Positions 3,192-41,677 of a stretch of DNA of 64,000 bases are shown here, piece by piece. The stretch's first letter is position 1. Each line of letters opens with the position of its first letter. The translations under genes and the position numbers were made by a program. The notes under the pieces are model-generated. The model saw only the letters and a program-made list of their open reading frames with translations, made no database searches and had not been told where the DNA came from. The DNA lies in sequence record NC_048668.1. The stretch is one strand, 5' to 3'.

Positions 3192-4167
3192 ATGGCAACT
3201 CCAAAAGTAGTAGACTTCTTTGACACCAACGCAGCGGCGGCTAAACCTCAACGTACCGGTTCGCAAGTTCCGTAGCTGGGCCAATGGTCAGCTGAACAAG
3301 GCTGAAAAAGAAGCCGGTCTGAGCCTGGTCGGCTTCCCTAAGCCGGTAGGTAAATCCGGCAAACATCACTGGTCGAATCGTGCCCTGTCTAAATGGGCTA
3401 AGGTGAACAACGCAGCACTGGTTACTCTGGGTTACCATGTTAAGGTAGCTGAGAAGAAGACCGTTCAAACTATCGGCACTGCTGAACTGACTCGCGAATA
3501 CGGTATTTCCGCAACCCGTCTGAATATGCTGGCGAAAGCAACTGGCGTGACTCGGGAAGAGGCTGGAGCAGGAATGTCCTTGGGCGGATTCCCTAAACCG
3601 ATAAAAGTCGGGGCTGCAAATCTCTGGCCTAAAGTAGCGATCCGTAAGTGGTTCAAAGCTAACAAGGATGCCCTGGAGCATCTCGGTTATATCCCTTCAT
3701 TTAACAAAAAGGCTGCTAAACCAGCTAACGCCGCTAAGGCAATCAAACCTAAGGCGCTGAAACAACCGGTCGTTAAGGCGAGCAAGAAAGTTGAAACGGC
3801 GCCGGATATTCTGGGCGAAGAAAACACAAAGAGAAAGCCGAGCTACTCTGCGACGATCTCCGCTCCGGATAATTTGAAATTCCTTATTGCCACTAAGCCC
3901 GGTAGTTCGGTTAGAGCGTCCTCTATCTCCGTCGCCAGCACGGATGTAGAAACCGCCCTCATCGCACTGGCTGAACTGTTAAAACCCGTCGTCGTCGTTA
4001 GCACCAACGCTACGGCTCGTCTTGTCATGAGCAAGTACAATGCTCAACTCAAAGAACTGATGGGTGACGCGGGACAGCTCACTAAACTGAGTAACGACTT
4101 TGAAAAGCGTCTGATGGACGTTCAACGTCTGTCGTCCGGTATCGAGATCGCTGTAACTAAACTGTAA
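3192..4167 (+). CDS. putative DNA-binding protein with two AlpA/Xis-like FPKP repeats; +1 base at 3246-3247
   Basis: ATG 3192 (MATPKVVDFFDTNAAAAK) joins the 3220 frame after removing one C; repeats GFPKPVGKSGKHHWSNRALSKW and GFPKPIKVGAANLWPKVAIRKW. Confidence 0.65.
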
Positions 4168-31066: not shown

Positions 31067-31092
31067 ACCACTCTCTTTAATTCATTTTTTAC

Positions 31093-31255
31093 GTCGTGTC
31101 TTATAGTGTGCTAAAAGCACACAAGACATCTCGCAAGAGGGGTCACGGCGGAGCCTGTGACTATTAGGGGTTAGAATGACTGAGGAATGTAATGACGAAA
31201 GGAATTCCCTAAGAGTACGGCTAGCTAAATACCCTAGATGAATTAGTGTGATTAT
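31093..31255 (+). ncRNA. candidate structured non-coding RNA or leader
   Basis: ORF-free interval with consecutive stems tgtctt/aagaca, gtgtgct/agcacac, ctc-gcaa-gag, gtcac/gtgac, ggaat/attcc. Confidence 0.35.
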
Positions 31256-32534: not shown

Positions 32535-33204
32535 ATGCGCATGGTATTCTGGACTCTTGTCCTTTGCTTGGTAACATTCAGTTTCCCAGCAACCGCATCT
32601 GTATCCGTGAACCAGGCCGGTTGGAATAAACACAAAACCGTCTTGCTTTCTACGTCCAAACGTACGGACGTAAACATGATGGATCTAGTCATTTTGGCTA
32701 GCATCGAATCAACTATGGGTCAAAATCGTCATAACCGTTCCAGCTCCGCCGCAGGTCTGTTTGGGTTCACCGACAGTACGTGGCGTGTAATGGTTAAGCG
32801 TTACGGTAAACAGTACGGCATTCGACCTGGTACAAGTAAACAAAACCCGCGAGCCAACGCTTTGATGGCTGCGGAAATACATCAAGGAAAATCAACGATA
32901 TCTTGAGAAGCAACTTCACCGTAAAGTCGGTATCGAAGAAATCTACATGGCTCACTTGCTCGGGCCTGGAGACGCTGTCAAGATCCTCAAAGCGCGTAAC
33001 GGTTGTTACGCTTCTTCCGTAACGCCTAGTGCTGCTCGGGGCAATAAAGCGTTCTTCTACGATAAAGGACGTGCCCGTACTGTAGCAGGATTTAAGCAAT
33101 ACGTTCATTCGAAAGTTAACAGCCACCGCAAAGCTTATAAAAGCGAAGTGGTTCTCTTAGCTTACAAACATCAACTCCCCCTAACTTTAGCTGACGCAAC
33201 TTAA
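32535..33204 (+). CDS. signal-peptide-bearing lytic transglycosylase (phiKZ gp144-like catalytic domain); +1 base at 32875-32877
   Basis: ASIES catalytic Glu, SSAAGLFGF..STW, NPRANALMAAE, YMAHLLGPG; removing one A joins the two ORFs. Confidence 0.8.
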
Positions 33205-33313
33205 GCGTTCCGGGAATAACGAAGTGACCATGGCGAGAGTAACTCATCCTTTCCTCTAGTTAATTCTAGAGGAAAGGGATCTATTCACTATTTTGTTAAA
33301 ACAAGGAAACAAA

Positions 33314-37673: not shown

Positions 37674-38507
37674 TTACATGAATCCGCCGATAAGGTTTCG
37701 GTAATAGTTCCCAGCTGCACTGGCATCCGAAAGGAAGTTGACAGCTTGCCATTCTTCCCTGAAGTATTCTTTATAGAGCTCTGCTGCATCCGAGTATCCG
37801 TCGACGAACTCTTGGATGACTGGCATTTCACTACCACCTTCCAAGTAGCCCTGATTAAGACTTACCTTCAGATTATTATAGATCCATGCTTTCGTTGCAT
37901 AGACGCACAGCTGAACAAATTGTGGAACAGCCCTAGGTGGCAGGGTATTCATATCAGCGTCATGGGAAACACGGCAGGTAATAGAGCCTTGTTTAACAGA
38001 ACCCATGTAGTCCGTGATGAGAATCGTATTCTCACCAATCAGACGGACAGCTGCTGAACCCGTAAGACCACCTGGGGCGGCGGAGGTGAGGATTTTAGAT
38101 GCGTAGTTCATCAACTGGGAGTTACCACAGTTGTTCATCGAGTAGTCGTTGTTCAACGTACCACCGATCATGGTTTGTGCACCCAGGTTATACGTATAGT
38201 TGAAGTACAACGTTTCAACAATAGTACGACCCTGAGTTAAACGTTTAGGGATACGTACCACGGTACGATAGTCACCAGTTGGATCAGGGATTACTTCCGC
38301 TTGAGCTAATGGGATGTTAATCTCAAGAGCACCGAGAAGGTTACAATCTGCCCTGACTTTCGCATCGATAACTTTGTTACGGATCTCCCAGTCCAATGAC
38401 CCCGGAGAGATTCGTTCCCTTCCTCGTTTACCGAGAAATGCTATTTCAAGGACATCGGTTGGAATTTCAAACCGAATATCCGAGATAACTTTATGAAGGA
38501 CTGACAT
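37674..38507 (-). CDS. conserved phiKZ-family virion-associated protein
   Basis: 277 aa, divergent from phuZ as in phiKZ-like genomes. Confidence 0.65.
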   Translation of the reverse strand: MSVLHKVISDIRFEIPTDVLEIAFLGKRGRERISPGSLDWEIRNKVIDAKVRADCNLLGALEINIPLAQAEVIPDPTGDYRTVVRIPKRLTQGRTIVETLYFNYTYNLGAQTMIGGTLNNDYSMNNCGNSQLMNYASKILTSAAPGGLTGSAAVRLIGENTILITDYMGSVKQGSITCRVSHDADMNTLPPRAVPQFVQLCVYATKAWIYNNLKVSLNQGYLEGGSEMPVIQEFVDGYSDAAELYKEYFREEWQAVNFLSDASAAGNYYRNLIGGFM

Positions 38508-38613
38508 GGGCTACCTCCTAGTAGGATCCGTCAGGTTATTTTTTACATCTCTTCTGAAGATGTGTAGCAATTACACAGATAAAGTAGTTTTTTCTTATCA
38601 GTAGTGAGGAAAT

Positions 38614-39576
38614 ATGCAAACTCGTAATAGCGTCTCTATCTATGGTTGTGGCGGTGCCGGTATCGACCTGGTAAACCGTCTGCTCGATCAAGACCTCAGT
38701 GGTCTGGCTTATGTCAACGCTGCCTTCGTAGACAGCAGCAAATCCAACTTCAACGGACGCTACGATCCTAAGACGTGTTACGTCCTGGAAGGCGTAGATG
38801 GCTCCGGTAAAGAGCGTTCGATCAACTACCCTCTGATCGCTCGTGCAGTAGACGATGTTCTGCTGTCACACAAACCATCCGACCTGAACATCCTGGTCTT
38901 CTCTGCATCCGGCGGTACTGGTTCAGTATTCTCACTGAAAATCGCCGAAGCGCTGTGGGAACAAAACAAAGCCGTTCTGCTGTTCGTCGTCGGTTCGACC
39001 GAAAGCGGTAAAACCACCGGTAACGTTCTGGATACTCTGTATTCGATCGATACCATGGCTCGGAAGAAAAACGTCTCTGCGGTTGTCTACTACGACACCA
39101 ATGGCAGCAACGTCCGTAACTCTGAAGTCGACATCAACATGCTGACCGGTATGCGTTGGATCCTGGATCTCTACGCAGGTACTCACCACGGCCTTGATAG
39201 CGCCGATGTTCTCAACTGGGCTCGTCCTACTAGCGGCGCCAAAGTAACACCTCAGCTCTGCCTGCTGGACATCACCGAAGATCGCAACGAAGCGATCGAA
39301 ATCGAAGCACCAATCTCTGTTGCTGAACTGCACGGTGACGACTATCGTGGTGAAGGTACTATCGCCGCTGACTACAGCGCGTATGGTAACCGTCGCGAAA
39401 GTGGTAAAGGTTCTCTGTACTTCAGCATCTACACCCATGGCCTGGGTTCGCTGATGGATGAACTGAAAACCATCAAGGACGATTACGAGCGTCGTAAGGC
39501 CTCTCGTGAGAAACTGACTTCTTCTGTAATGAAGAACTCTGGGCCGTCCGAAGACGACGGGATGTTTTTCTCCTAA
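38614..39576 (+). CDS. phuZ: PhuZ phage tubulin
   Basis: GCGGAG, GSGKER and tubulin signature SASGGTGS; 320 aa. Confidence 0.92.
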   Translation: MQTRNSVSIYGCGGAGIDLVNRLLDQDLSGLAYVNAAFVDSSKSNFNGRYDPKTCYVLEGVDGSGKERSINYPLIARAVDDVLLSHKPSDLNILVFSASGGTGSVFSLKIAEALWEQNKAVLLFVVGSTESGKTTGNVLDTLYSIDTMARKKNVSAVVYYDTNGSNVRNSEVDINMLTGMRWILDLYAGTHHGLDSADVLNWARPTSGAKVTPQLCLLDITEDRNEAIEIEAPISVAELHGDDYRGEGTIAADYSAYGNRRESGKGSLYFSIYTHGLGSLMDELKTIKDDYERRKASREKLTSSVMKNSGPSEDDGMFFS

Positions 39577-39579
39577 TAG

Positions 39580-39910
39580 TATGTAGAAAACATTCTTCGT
39601 GTTTCAAAGTAGTTCAATCTTGATCTTCGGCAGTTAACGCTGCGCTTGGATTCGGATAAAACTCTGGGCGGGGTTAACCTCCCGCTCCGTTTAACAATTT
39701 GGAAAAGGTCTGAAGAAGACCAACTCCTCGCGGATTAAGTTCCGTACATTAGCCGACTAAATCGTATTCGGCTCTAAACAAGATATACCGCACTATAGAT
39801 CTGCAAACAAACGTTGAACGATTGAACGCTGTAGCGTCTTCCTTCCGTAGCTATCTCCCTCGGCGACCTTAACCGGTCGTCGGGGAGAGATATGCTATTA
39901 TGACTTTTTG
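39580..39910 (+). ncRNA. candidate non-coding RNA with repeated UUAA-loop hairpins
   Basis: TATGTA motif at 39580, no ORF, at least six hairpins, long terminator stem 39848-39897 with T-run. Confidence 0.45.
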
Positions 39911-39929
39911 CTCGAAATGATTTCAGAAC

Positions 39930-39947
39930 TATATTACTACAATGATA
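39930..39947 (+). promoter_or_regulatory. early promoter TATATTAC-N5-TGATA
   Basis: ctatattactacaatgata upstream of the 11-gene array. Confidence 0.8.
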
Positions 39948-40062
39948 GGAGTTTTATACTCTAGAACTTACTGTATCAAATTGTACGTAGCTTTCACTTA
40001 TAATGAGGGTAGTTGCTGCACATTTGGTATTAAATTGAATCTGGTGGATTACAGGGACAATT

Positions 40063-40455
40063 ATGATTGGGCAAACTACAGTAGTAGGTAACGTACCATT
40101 GCTGTTACGTTCTATCACGAAACCTTATCCTTACTTAGTCCATGAGAACACGATCTTCCAATTGATGTTATTCACTTGGTGGAGTGTAGGTGACCTCGGC
40201 TGGGCAGAGCAGTTGTATACCTGGGTAATCAGGACTGGTAAGGATGAGCTTCCTCGAGCAGCCATGCTACTACCGGGAAGGAACCCGGTCGATTACGATA
40301 GGATGTTATTCGAGATATTTGATAACGTCTGTAATCACGAAGACATCCTCACTGACTACATGATCTCGAGCTTCGACCATTATCGACATCTGTACATTGA
40401 GGAAATCTATTTTAGGAAAAGGGAATTCACACTGAAACTAGCGGTGAGAAAATGA
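40063..40455 (+). CDS. array gene 1, hypothetical
   Basis: 130 aa; ATGA overlap with the next gene. Confidence 0.7.
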   Translation: MIGQTTVVGNVPLLLRSITKPYPYLVHENTIFQLMLFTWWSVGDLGWAEQLYTWVIRTGKDELPRAAMLLPGRNPVDYDRMLFEIFDNVCNHEDILTDYMISSFDHYRHLYIEEIYFRKREFTLKLAVRK

Positions 40456-40817
40456 TTATACTTTACGACATCAACACGATGATCAGTATAGCGAGAAAGA
40501 TAGACCCAGAACTGAGCCAAGGAGACTTGCTTGAAATATTCATATTTTGCATTACGAAAGACAATGATCTAAATTTGGTACATCCGACTTATATTGACGG
40601 ATCAAACAGAAGAGTAGCTGAGACAGTCAGGAGATTATGGCGGTTCATGCCAGGTTATAATTTCTTGGATATAGAGGATGTTCAACTCGCTCCATTCGGC
40701 CGTGTAGCAATACACGTAGATGAAGAGGAGTTCTACGACAGAAACCCTAATGCAATCCCTAGGAGTAAGTCATGGAGAGAATATACCGTCTCGACTACCC
40801 AATGTCTGTTCAAGTAA
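40452..40817 (+). CDS. array gene 2, hypothetical
   Basis: 121 aa; begins MIILYD. Confidence 0.7.
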   Translation: MIILYDINTMISIARKIDPELSQGDLLEIFIFCITKDNDLNLVHPTYIDGSNRRVAETVRRLWRFMPGYNFLDIEDVQLAPFGRVAIHVDEEEFYDRNPNAIPRSKSWREYTVSTTQCLFK

Positions 40818-41188
40818 TCCTGAATAAGCTGGATGGTTTGGAAGCTAAATACCGATTCCTTTATTCGTTAGTGAACACCGCTATATGGACAGGGATCTAC
40901 GAAGGGGAATCGGATAAAACCCTTTCCTTCAACGAACATTATTACAACGATCACATCGAGTACGTATACGACGACGAAGAGATGTCTGAAGAAACTCTAC
41001 AGGCTAGGATGAAGGAGTTGGATTTCTTATCTGACTTATTCACTCGACCTGAGGGAATCAATCTCTTCGAGAACAGCCTGGCTACAATGGGTCGTTCTTT
41101 GTCAGATATCGTAGACGGTTTAGCCGATCCAGTTCTGGCTGTAGAAACCGCCTTGATTAGTCACTACGATGTTTCAGTTATGGATTAG
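40772..41188 (+). CDS. array gene 3, acidic hypothetical
   Basis: RBS AGGAG; 138 aa. Confidence 0.7.
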   Translation: MERIYRLDYPMSVQVILNKLDGLEAKYRFLYSLVNTAIWTGIYEGESDKTLSFNEHYYNDHIEYVYDDEEMSEETLQARMKELDFLSDLFTRPEGINLFENSLATMGRSLSDIVDGLADPVLAVETALISHYDVSVMD

Positions 41189-41197
41189 AGGATTGCA

Positions 41198-41677
41198 ATG
41201 GGCAAGTTAGTTGTCGTAGATAGTTATTCGTTAACCGGGTTCTTGCTCAGTACAATACGACAGTTTATCCGTCGGTATCCTGAGTACCGTGAACGAATCG
41301 ATCCGAACATTTCGATAAACAATTTGCAAGAAACTACCGAGCGCATCATCTGGAATATCATTCAGAAGGACAAGCGTTTCGGTTCCCCGGAGTATTGGGA
41401 TGAGGTTCAGGAAATCGGGAAGTGGTTCAAGGGCTACGATCCCGAAGGCGTCTATATAGACGACCGTGGTGAAGAGCAAAATAGCGATGAGATGTCAGGT
41501 GAATTCTTCCGTGAAGTTATCGACATGTACGAAGTTCGTATCCGGTCAGTATTGGGATCGATCGGCGTAGATCTCAGCTGGGAATATTTGGAGTACGAGA
41601 AATCTACACCAACCGCTCTTCTATTACGGAGTCACGGTGACTATCGTATTTACGATTATCACAAACGTAATGGGTGA
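41198..41677 (+). CDS. array gene 4, acidic hypothetical
   Basis: RBS GAGGA; begins MGKLVVVD. Confidence 0.75.
   Translation: MGKLVVVDSYSLTGFLLSTIRQFIRRYPEYRERIDPNISINNLQETTERIIWNIIQKDKRFGSPEYWDEVQEIGKWFKGYDPEGVYIDDRGEEQNSDEMSGEFFREVIDMYEVRIRSVLGSIGVDLSWEYLEYEKSTPTALLLRSHGDYRIYDYHKRNG

Follow-up and report, generated by a model that had tools for sequence, protein, structure and literature searches.

The closest described counterparts of the locus reported here come from phiKZ, another nucleus-forming jumbo phage, for which two UTR-derived non-coding RNA (ncRNA) candidates have been described, namely 5'UTR_p40 of about 180 nt and 3'UTR_PHIKZ298 of about 100 nt (PMC8545117; PMC10914365). The late promoter of phiKZ, which is read by the non-virion RNA polymerase, consists of the motif TATG, the G of which is the +1 position (PMC4666361). 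Late and highly abundant ncRNAs, ncRNA1 and ncRNA2, are also reported for the Pseudomonas phage PAK_P3 (Chevallereau 2016 cited in PMC10914365). In the citing account, these PAK_P3 RNAs figure as 3' UTR processing products without a transcription start of their own, and they belong to an unrelated phage group (PMC10914365).

The DNA analysed here, referred to as the window, is a stretch of 64,000 nt that corresponds to genome positions 186001-250000 of the Serratia jumbo phage vB_SmaM_2050HW, a nucleus-forming member of the genus Moabitevirus with a 276-kb genome. The gene for its tubulin PhuZ (320 aa) occupies positions 38614-39576 on the + strand, as judged from the ORF list, the RefSeq annotation of 2050HW and Moabite and tblastn searches of relatives. 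The stop codon of phuZ lies at 39574-76 and the next annotated gene begins at 40063, leaving a gap of 486 nt for which RefSeq and GenBank hold no annotated feature except one terminator in the Moabite record. A preliminary description, made from the letters of the DNA, had placed an ncRNA of about 320 nt in this gap, and a conserved and structured + strand non-coding unit of about 325 nt is what the present analysis recovers. The fold, the identity to the relative Totoro, the pattern of differences between the two and contigs from RNA-labelled libraries together point to a predicted ncRNA at 39583-39909 on the + strand. That such a structured, conserved, + strand non-coding unit is real is well supported, and we put the probability that 39583-39909 is the gene for a Moabitevirus-specific structured ncRNA of about 325 nt at roughly 60%.

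With the two phiKZ candidates the predicted RNA shares the absence of an ORF, a wealth of stem-loops, a terminator at the end and a place in an intergenic gap of a nucleus-forming jumbo phage. It differs from them in being larger and more complex and in having its own predicted TATG(TA) start directly past a stop codon; moreover, while the phiKZ candidates are abundant in phiKZ, the Moabitevirus RNA is known from sequence prediction. 5'UTR_p40 was considered as a positional homolog and rejected, since PHIKZ_p40 is situated at 114.5 kb and in phiKZ only 55 nt separate PhuZ from gp40. A covariance model of the element, run against the phiKZ PhuZ locus, found nothing in that locus. The likeness to ncRNA1 and ncRNA2 of PAK_P3, as these are cited in PMC10914365, is that of late, abundant phage ncRNAs, and the element shares no Rfam family with them.

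The element is 87% identical to its counterpart in Totoro, whereas third codon positions of phuZ reach only 60% and the downstream genes 59-70%, which supports strong selection on the element. Differences from Totoro fall on 8% of the paired as against 22% of the unpaired columns (Fisher p = 0.0005). Eleven pairs of the model are changed. Pairing survives in six of these, and in two of the six both bases have been replaced (hairpin C3, A-U to G-C; terminator, U-A to C-G); the five that are broken all lie at helix ends. Six positions vary when eight close genomes and three contigs of environmental origin are compared, and every one of them falls in a loop, in a linker or on a pair that is kept. 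The preliminary description had looked to covariation across relatives, and the stems and the UUAA loops are indeed largely kept in Totoro along with the two two-sided changes; coming from two distinct lineages only, the 2050HW-like one and Totoro as a single divergent relative, this covariation is suggestive, not conclusive. The pair-keeping changes support hairpins B and C3 and the terminator, the remainder of the fold being a prediction.

The asymmetry between the strands is consistent with a structured RNA read from the + strand. A 349-nt stretch folds at -114.7 kcal/mol on the + strand, compared with -87.2 +/- 5.0 in dinucleotide shuffles (z -5.5), and at -98.7 kcal/mol (z -2.3) on the - strand, and the fold model contains many G-U pairs that are possible on the + strand only. 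The 2050HW genome has 21 ORF-poor gaps that are 300 nt or longer; the one behind phuZ ranks third among them by fold energy, and the element is one of several structured non-coding regions in this phage. The strongest-folding gap lies outside the window, at genome positions 130712-131463; it spans 752 nt without an ORF of at least 75 aa, its best 330-nt window reaches -134 kcal/mol (z about -7.6 relative to mononucleotide shuffles), and it has no real Rfam match.

In the model, a long and bulged stem-loop A (39606-39663, found in minimum free energy and consensus folds) carries the apical loop UUAACG (39634-39); its stem is invariant in Totoro, where the loop reads CUAACC, and an environmental contig has UUAACA instead. 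Stem-loop B (39666-39687), with a G-rich 5' arm and a C-rich 3' arm, resembles a terminator and is predicted to close on the loop GUUAACCU. Its two differences in Totoro are one-sided and keep the pairs (G-C to G-U and G-U to A-U), and the Totoro loop, AUUAAAAC, retains UUAA. There follows a multi-branch domain C (39688-39820), closed in the folds by a helix of CGUUUAAC with GUUGAACG and holding hairpins C1 (39707-21, loop GAAGA), C2 (39730-45, loop UUAAGU) and C3 (39751-73). Besides its two-sided A-U to G-C change, C3 shows a C-G to U-G change in Totoro, and the environmental variant A39809G turns a U-A pair of domain C into U-G. The closing helix of the domain and the other long-range helices are invariant in all sequences compared, and the long-range helices are best regarded as predictions. 

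The alignment also reveals a run of 77 nt (39775-39851) that is invariant between 2050HW and Totoro and is largely single-stranded in the model. Inside it lies a tandem TTGAACG repeat (39814-28), which is complementary to CGUUUAAC (39688-95) or, shifted, to GUUCAAUC (39612-19; 8/8 complementary). An alternative pairing of 39612-19 with 39820-27 competes around this repeat in the model, all positions concerned being invariant, and such alternatives could amount to a pseudoknot or a switch. Kissing of the palindromic GUUAAC loops was also considered and was rejected, as these loops are not kept as such in Totoro.

At the 5' end, the preliminary description had placed a TATGTA late-type start 3 nt past the phuZ stop, and the motif is found there, at 39580-39585 on the + strand, with G39583 as the predicted +1 by analogy with the TATG rule of phiKZ. 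TATGTA is rarer than expected in 2050HW, with 35 copies on the + strand and 12 on the - strand against about 86 expected per strand, and roughly 20 of these 47 copies precede genes by 30-100 nt in DNA free of ORFs. The genes so preceded include the divergent pair of the tail sheath gene gp268 and the virion protein gene gp269, as well as the tRNA island. The motif recurs 3-28 nt past the phuZ stop in Moabitevirus, in Maaswegvirus (FBKp24, KpYy_2_45) and in Iapetusvirus (PhiEaH1), so that it is invariant in five lineages of three genera amid unrelated surrounding sequence, and its frequency in the phuZ loci compared is only once or twice per 6-kb locus. One environmental contig (run X25) begins at 39582, adjoining the predicted +1. 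On the phiKZ analogy, 39580-85 is a predicted late-type start of the ncRNA unit. Two further TATGTA motifs stand at genome positions 264773 and 264991, beyond the end of the window, at the start of the tRNA island, and this type of promoter may drive other non-coding RNAs too.

At the 3' end, the long terminator that had been proposed to close the unit is present. The folds, the comparison with Totoro and the terminator annotated at the equivalent place in the Moabite record agree on a hairpin at 39847-39909 (+) with a stem of about 22 bp (39847-39899), the loop UUAACC (39869-74) and a U-rich tail with a U run at 39905-09, that is, the G+C-rich hairpin followed by a U run that characterises an intrinsic terminator. 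A simple terminator scan, in which the U run had to lie 0-2 nt past the stem, did not list it, probably due to its U run standing 5-6 nt beyond the stem. The build of the hairpin is that of the terminator family of this genome, with a G-rich stem, a TTAATT or TTAACC loop and a TATTT tail. Standard 2050HW terminators have a G-rich 5' arm, a TTAATT loop and a C-rich 3' arm followed by (C)TATTTT, as at window positions 33247-33278 (genome 219247) and at genome positions 25558, 129160, 142067, 145665 and 186231; this family recalls the conserved terminator motif of phiKZ (PMC10914365). Hairpin B and the 3' hairpin share build and loop type with these terminators. The element as a whole differs from them in having four such loops in 330 nt and a conserved multi-branch fold, and two of its TTAA loops sit on small internal hairpins without U tails.

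Directly past the terminator, at 39921-39948 (+), lies a motif of the early-promoter type, TTTCA-N4-TATATTAC-N5-TGATAG, which would serve the downstream operon. It belongs to a genome-wide family, TTTCA-N3-4-TATATTAC-N5-TGATAG, with 14 copies on the + strand, and TATATTAC itself occurs five times in the window. Given this promoter, the ncRNA unit is confined to about 39583-39909. A helix that joined the 5' and 3' ends in the first fold was discarded as spurious, since its 3' strand is part of the consensus of these early promoters.

The absence of an ORF that had been claimed for 39580-39910 holds, in that no real ORF is present. The sole + strand ORF within the element, of 30 aa with a TTG start, was rejected as a gene; it has no ribosome-binding site, and its nine base differences from Totoro are mostly amino-acid-changing, with seven amino-acid changes, and hence give no sign of coding constraint. 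As to described RNAs, a search of Rfam 15 (cmscan, 38000-41500, both strands) with E values up to 10 matched no family, and ARAGORN found no tRNA in the window. Thus there was no match of the element to 6S RNA, tmRNA, tRNA, riboswitches, group I introns, ribozymes, GOLLD/ROOL or the other described families searched, and riboswitch, T-box and leader families in Rfam gave none at the element either. Tandem repeats of about 30-40 nt, as in ToxI-like type III antitoxins, are absent from the element, whose repeats are short and two-copy only (the longest 16 nt at 75% identity) apart from the tandem 7-mer. No paralogous copies of it were found in the 2050HW genome, and no similarity to the three-copy leader RNA at 31086-31212 was detected. 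The RNA would constitute a new phage RNA family and is a candidate for Rfam.

Homologs were sought by blastn against phages, by scanning viral, metagenome and genome contigs for exact patterns and with a 275-nt covariance model. The blastn matches were 10 Moabitevirus records only, the exact-pattern scans of all three kinds of contigs returned chance matches or nothing, and PhuZ-based locus searches revealed no new close lineage. In the gaps behind phuZ of PhiEaH1, SPLA10 and FBKp24, neither blastn nor the covariance model detected anything significant. A shared UUAAGU 6-mer and the 10-mer ATTAAGTTCC held in common with PhiEaH1 were dismissed as being at chance level, given how many words were compared (about 0.2 expected). 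Judged by these sequence searches, the RNA is confined to Moabitevirus, with no detectable homolog elsewhere.

The position behind phuZ is more widely occupied. Throughout the clade with PhuZ at least 41% identical, phuZ is followed by ORF-free gaps of 204-486 nt, and TATGTA opens all of these units except that of SPLA10, which begins with TATATATGAG in its place; more distant PhuZ loci have short gaps after phuZ. The units of PhiEaH1 and SPLA10 are about 270-300 nt long and structured (z -2.8 and -2.6, respectively). In locus coordinates, these positional analogs lie at 3497-3790 in PhiEaH1, at about 3545-3815 in SPLA10 and at 3477-3555 and 3977-4055 in Maaswegvirus, and they are ORF-free and terminator-ended, with no homology detected between them and the RNA of Moabitevirus. 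The Maaswegvirus unit, of about 70 nt, comprises about 38 unpaired nt and a covarying terminator, and in its predicted form looks like a small RNA.

Some bearing on expression comes from environmental libraries. Three RNA-labelled wastewater runs from two studies contain words of the query, and the proportion of words matched was higher with the 334-nt element as query than with a longer query of 701 nt. When mapped on 38300-41300, each RNA-labelled run yields a single contig inside the element (39656-39862, 39633-39792 and 39582-39724), with word depths of 8, 3 and 20 against 0 in the flanks, figures to be read in the light of the runs having been found via the element's own sequence and of one run being flagged as probably DNA. 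A DNA-like run, on the other hand, has contigs scattered across phuZ, the element and the downstream genes. There are signs that RNA of the element accumulates in environmental samples, and a late, independent transcript that accumulates as a stable RNA appears somewhat the likelier case.

A more specific idea about function arose from the loops. The preliminary description had named four hairpins, gcag-TTAACG-ctgc (39630-43), gggcgggg-TTAACC-tcccgctc (39666-87), cgga-TTAAGT-tccg (39731-44) and cggcgacc-TTAACC-ggtcgtcg (39861-82), all of which are present, the last as the top of the stem of about 22 bp. It had taken the repeated loops as the hallmark of a protein sponge, and of this claim the four repeated loops stand, while their being special to the element does not. 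Genome-wide, TTAA is the most enriched hairpin-loop 4-mer, with 64 hairpins against about 15 in shuffles, and strong hairpins, too, carry it more often than any other motif (21 of 316, or about 7%), mainly because the terminators carry TTAATT, as a caveat of the same description had rightly anticipated for ordinary terminators. Being generic in the genome, the motif is not specific to the element RNA.

The element does carry TTAA on four of its eight hairpins, as against about 7% of strong hairpins genome-wide, and it is the only 330-nt window in the 276-kb genome with four TTAA-loop hairpins; since one in 20 block shuffles of the genome reaches four somewhere, the clustering on its own is borderline with respect to chance. 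Elsewhere, three TTAA hairpins within 330 nt are found only at genome positions 129109-129239 and at window positions 33201-33296 (genome 219201-219296); the latter site surrounds a TTAATT terminator of 13 bp and is flanked by gp286 and gp287. Within the loops, 15 of 16 TTAA letters are kept in Totoro compared with 4 of 10 at the other loop positions (p = 0.005). Together with the share of four in eight, this conservation lends weight to the loops having some role.

In overall design, the element resembles CsrB and RsmZ, which also have several hairpins with one short apical-loop motif, no ORF and a terminator end. Its motif, however, is UUAA and not GGA, it occurs in four copies rather than 7-22, and it is a generic hairpin loop of its genome; the Rfam models of CsrB, CsrC and RsmX/Y/Z gave no match (38000-41500, both strands, E up to 10). 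GGA itself is not enriched, the five copies in about 327 nt being roughly the chance number, and none lies in the apical loops of the model. A trans-acting role in protein binding via the UUAA loops nevertheless seems a reasonable reading. A further step, which we consider doubtful, would be a multivalent decoy or scaffold whose four UUAA loops and invariant block capture a protein that reads terminator loops (UUAA(UU)) and is thereby titrated or retargeted late in infection. The captured protein could be of phage or host origin, such as a termination, RNA-stability or nuclear-export factor, e.g. ChmC, or a host RNase. In a bolder variant, the RNA could be associated with particles, which would explain why it is the sole piece found in virus-enriched wastewater RNA libraries.

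Given the position of the element, one rival explanation is that the region is only a structured 3' UTR that stabilises or ends the phuZ mRNA, with no separate RNA and no function in trans. The end of phuZ is relevant here. A hairpin with a T run at 39544-39569, within the last phuZ codons, was picked up by the terminator scan as terminator-like; it loses one pair in Totoro, its T run codes for two conserved phenylalanines (Phe-Phe) in the PhuZ tail, and it is probably not a terminator. As this hairpin is not conserved, read-through of phuZ transcripts into the ncRNA unit is likely, the first convincing terminator downstream of phuZ being the one at 39847-39909, and the region probably serves as the 3' UTR of phuZ transcripts as well. 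An abundant fragment could even then arise through 3' UTR processing, as has been proposed for 3'UTR_PHIKZ298, and phiKZ and, according to the account of it in PMC10914365, PAK_P3 do produce abundant ncRNAs in this manner. Yet TATGTA follows the stop directly in three genera, which favours an independent start; the contigs of the RNA runs end at 39582 and none enters phuZ, and an invariant, largely unpaired block of 77 nt exceeds the needs of a stabiliser. A 3' UTR and nothing else is, on balance, improbable. We regard as similarly unlikely a cis-acting boundary module, made of the late promoter, a leader and a conditional terminator in front of the downstream operon, or an insulator between phuZ and the early operon. 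Such a module would fit the order of a terminator followed by an early promoter, which recurs, for example, at genome positions 150109-150154, as well as the resemblance of hairpin B to a weak terminator, the alternative pairings around the TTGAACG repeat, which could make a switch, and the 17 candidates of the premature-termination 5' UTR type in phiKZ. It fits poorly with a downstream operon that has its own early promoter past the terminator, with a terminator that is very strong (about 22 bp) and faces no obvious anti-terminator, with the lack of any matched riboswitch, T-box or leader family and with the Maaswegvirus equivalent, which at only about 70 nt is more like a small RNA than a leader.

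The conservation could also have nothing to do with RNA if the DNA itself were the functional element, as a replication origin, a packaging site or a set of protein-binding palindromes. Conserved palindromes centred on TTAA are present, and centromeres adjoin tubZ genes, a setting that the place beside phuZ brings to mind. The arms of the palindromes, however, differ from each other, the fold is asymmetric between the strands with G-U pairs kept or created, and the element is enriched in RNA libraries. A replication origin was specifically rejected, there being no turning point of the GC skew near genome position 225.6 kb, and a role at the DNA level is altogether highly improbable.

The reading that we favour, a gene for a structured ncRNA, would work as follows. 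The non-virion RNA polymerase would start late at the G of TATG (39583), as suggested by the motif and the phiKZ rule, and phuZ transcripts probably run into the unit too. Transcription would stop at the long phage-type terminator, for which the hairpin and its covariation can be seen and termination is the expected outcome. The RNA would fold into the bulged hairpin A, hairpin B, the multi-branch domain C, a small hairpin D and the terminator hairpin. Its structured ends may confer stability and hence accumulation well above the flanking mRNAs, as the environmental RNA libraries suggest. Most likely, it would act in trans as a protein-binding RNA, with the 77-nt single-stranded block and the four UUAA apical loops as the candidate surface.

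Jumbo phages that form a nucleus control their own transcription and RNA traffic, and their ncRNAs are little known beyond the few phiKZ candidates. If the present reading is true, Moabitevirus would possess a large and complex RNA, transcribed from a promoter of its own and constrained by selection about as strongly as a protein is. Without a phenotype or a partner, the practical significance of such an RNA would be modest. The locus matters in its own right, given that a non-coding unit after phuZ has been kept in three genera, and the element offers a concrete, deletable target with which the roles of RNA in jumbo phages could be probed.
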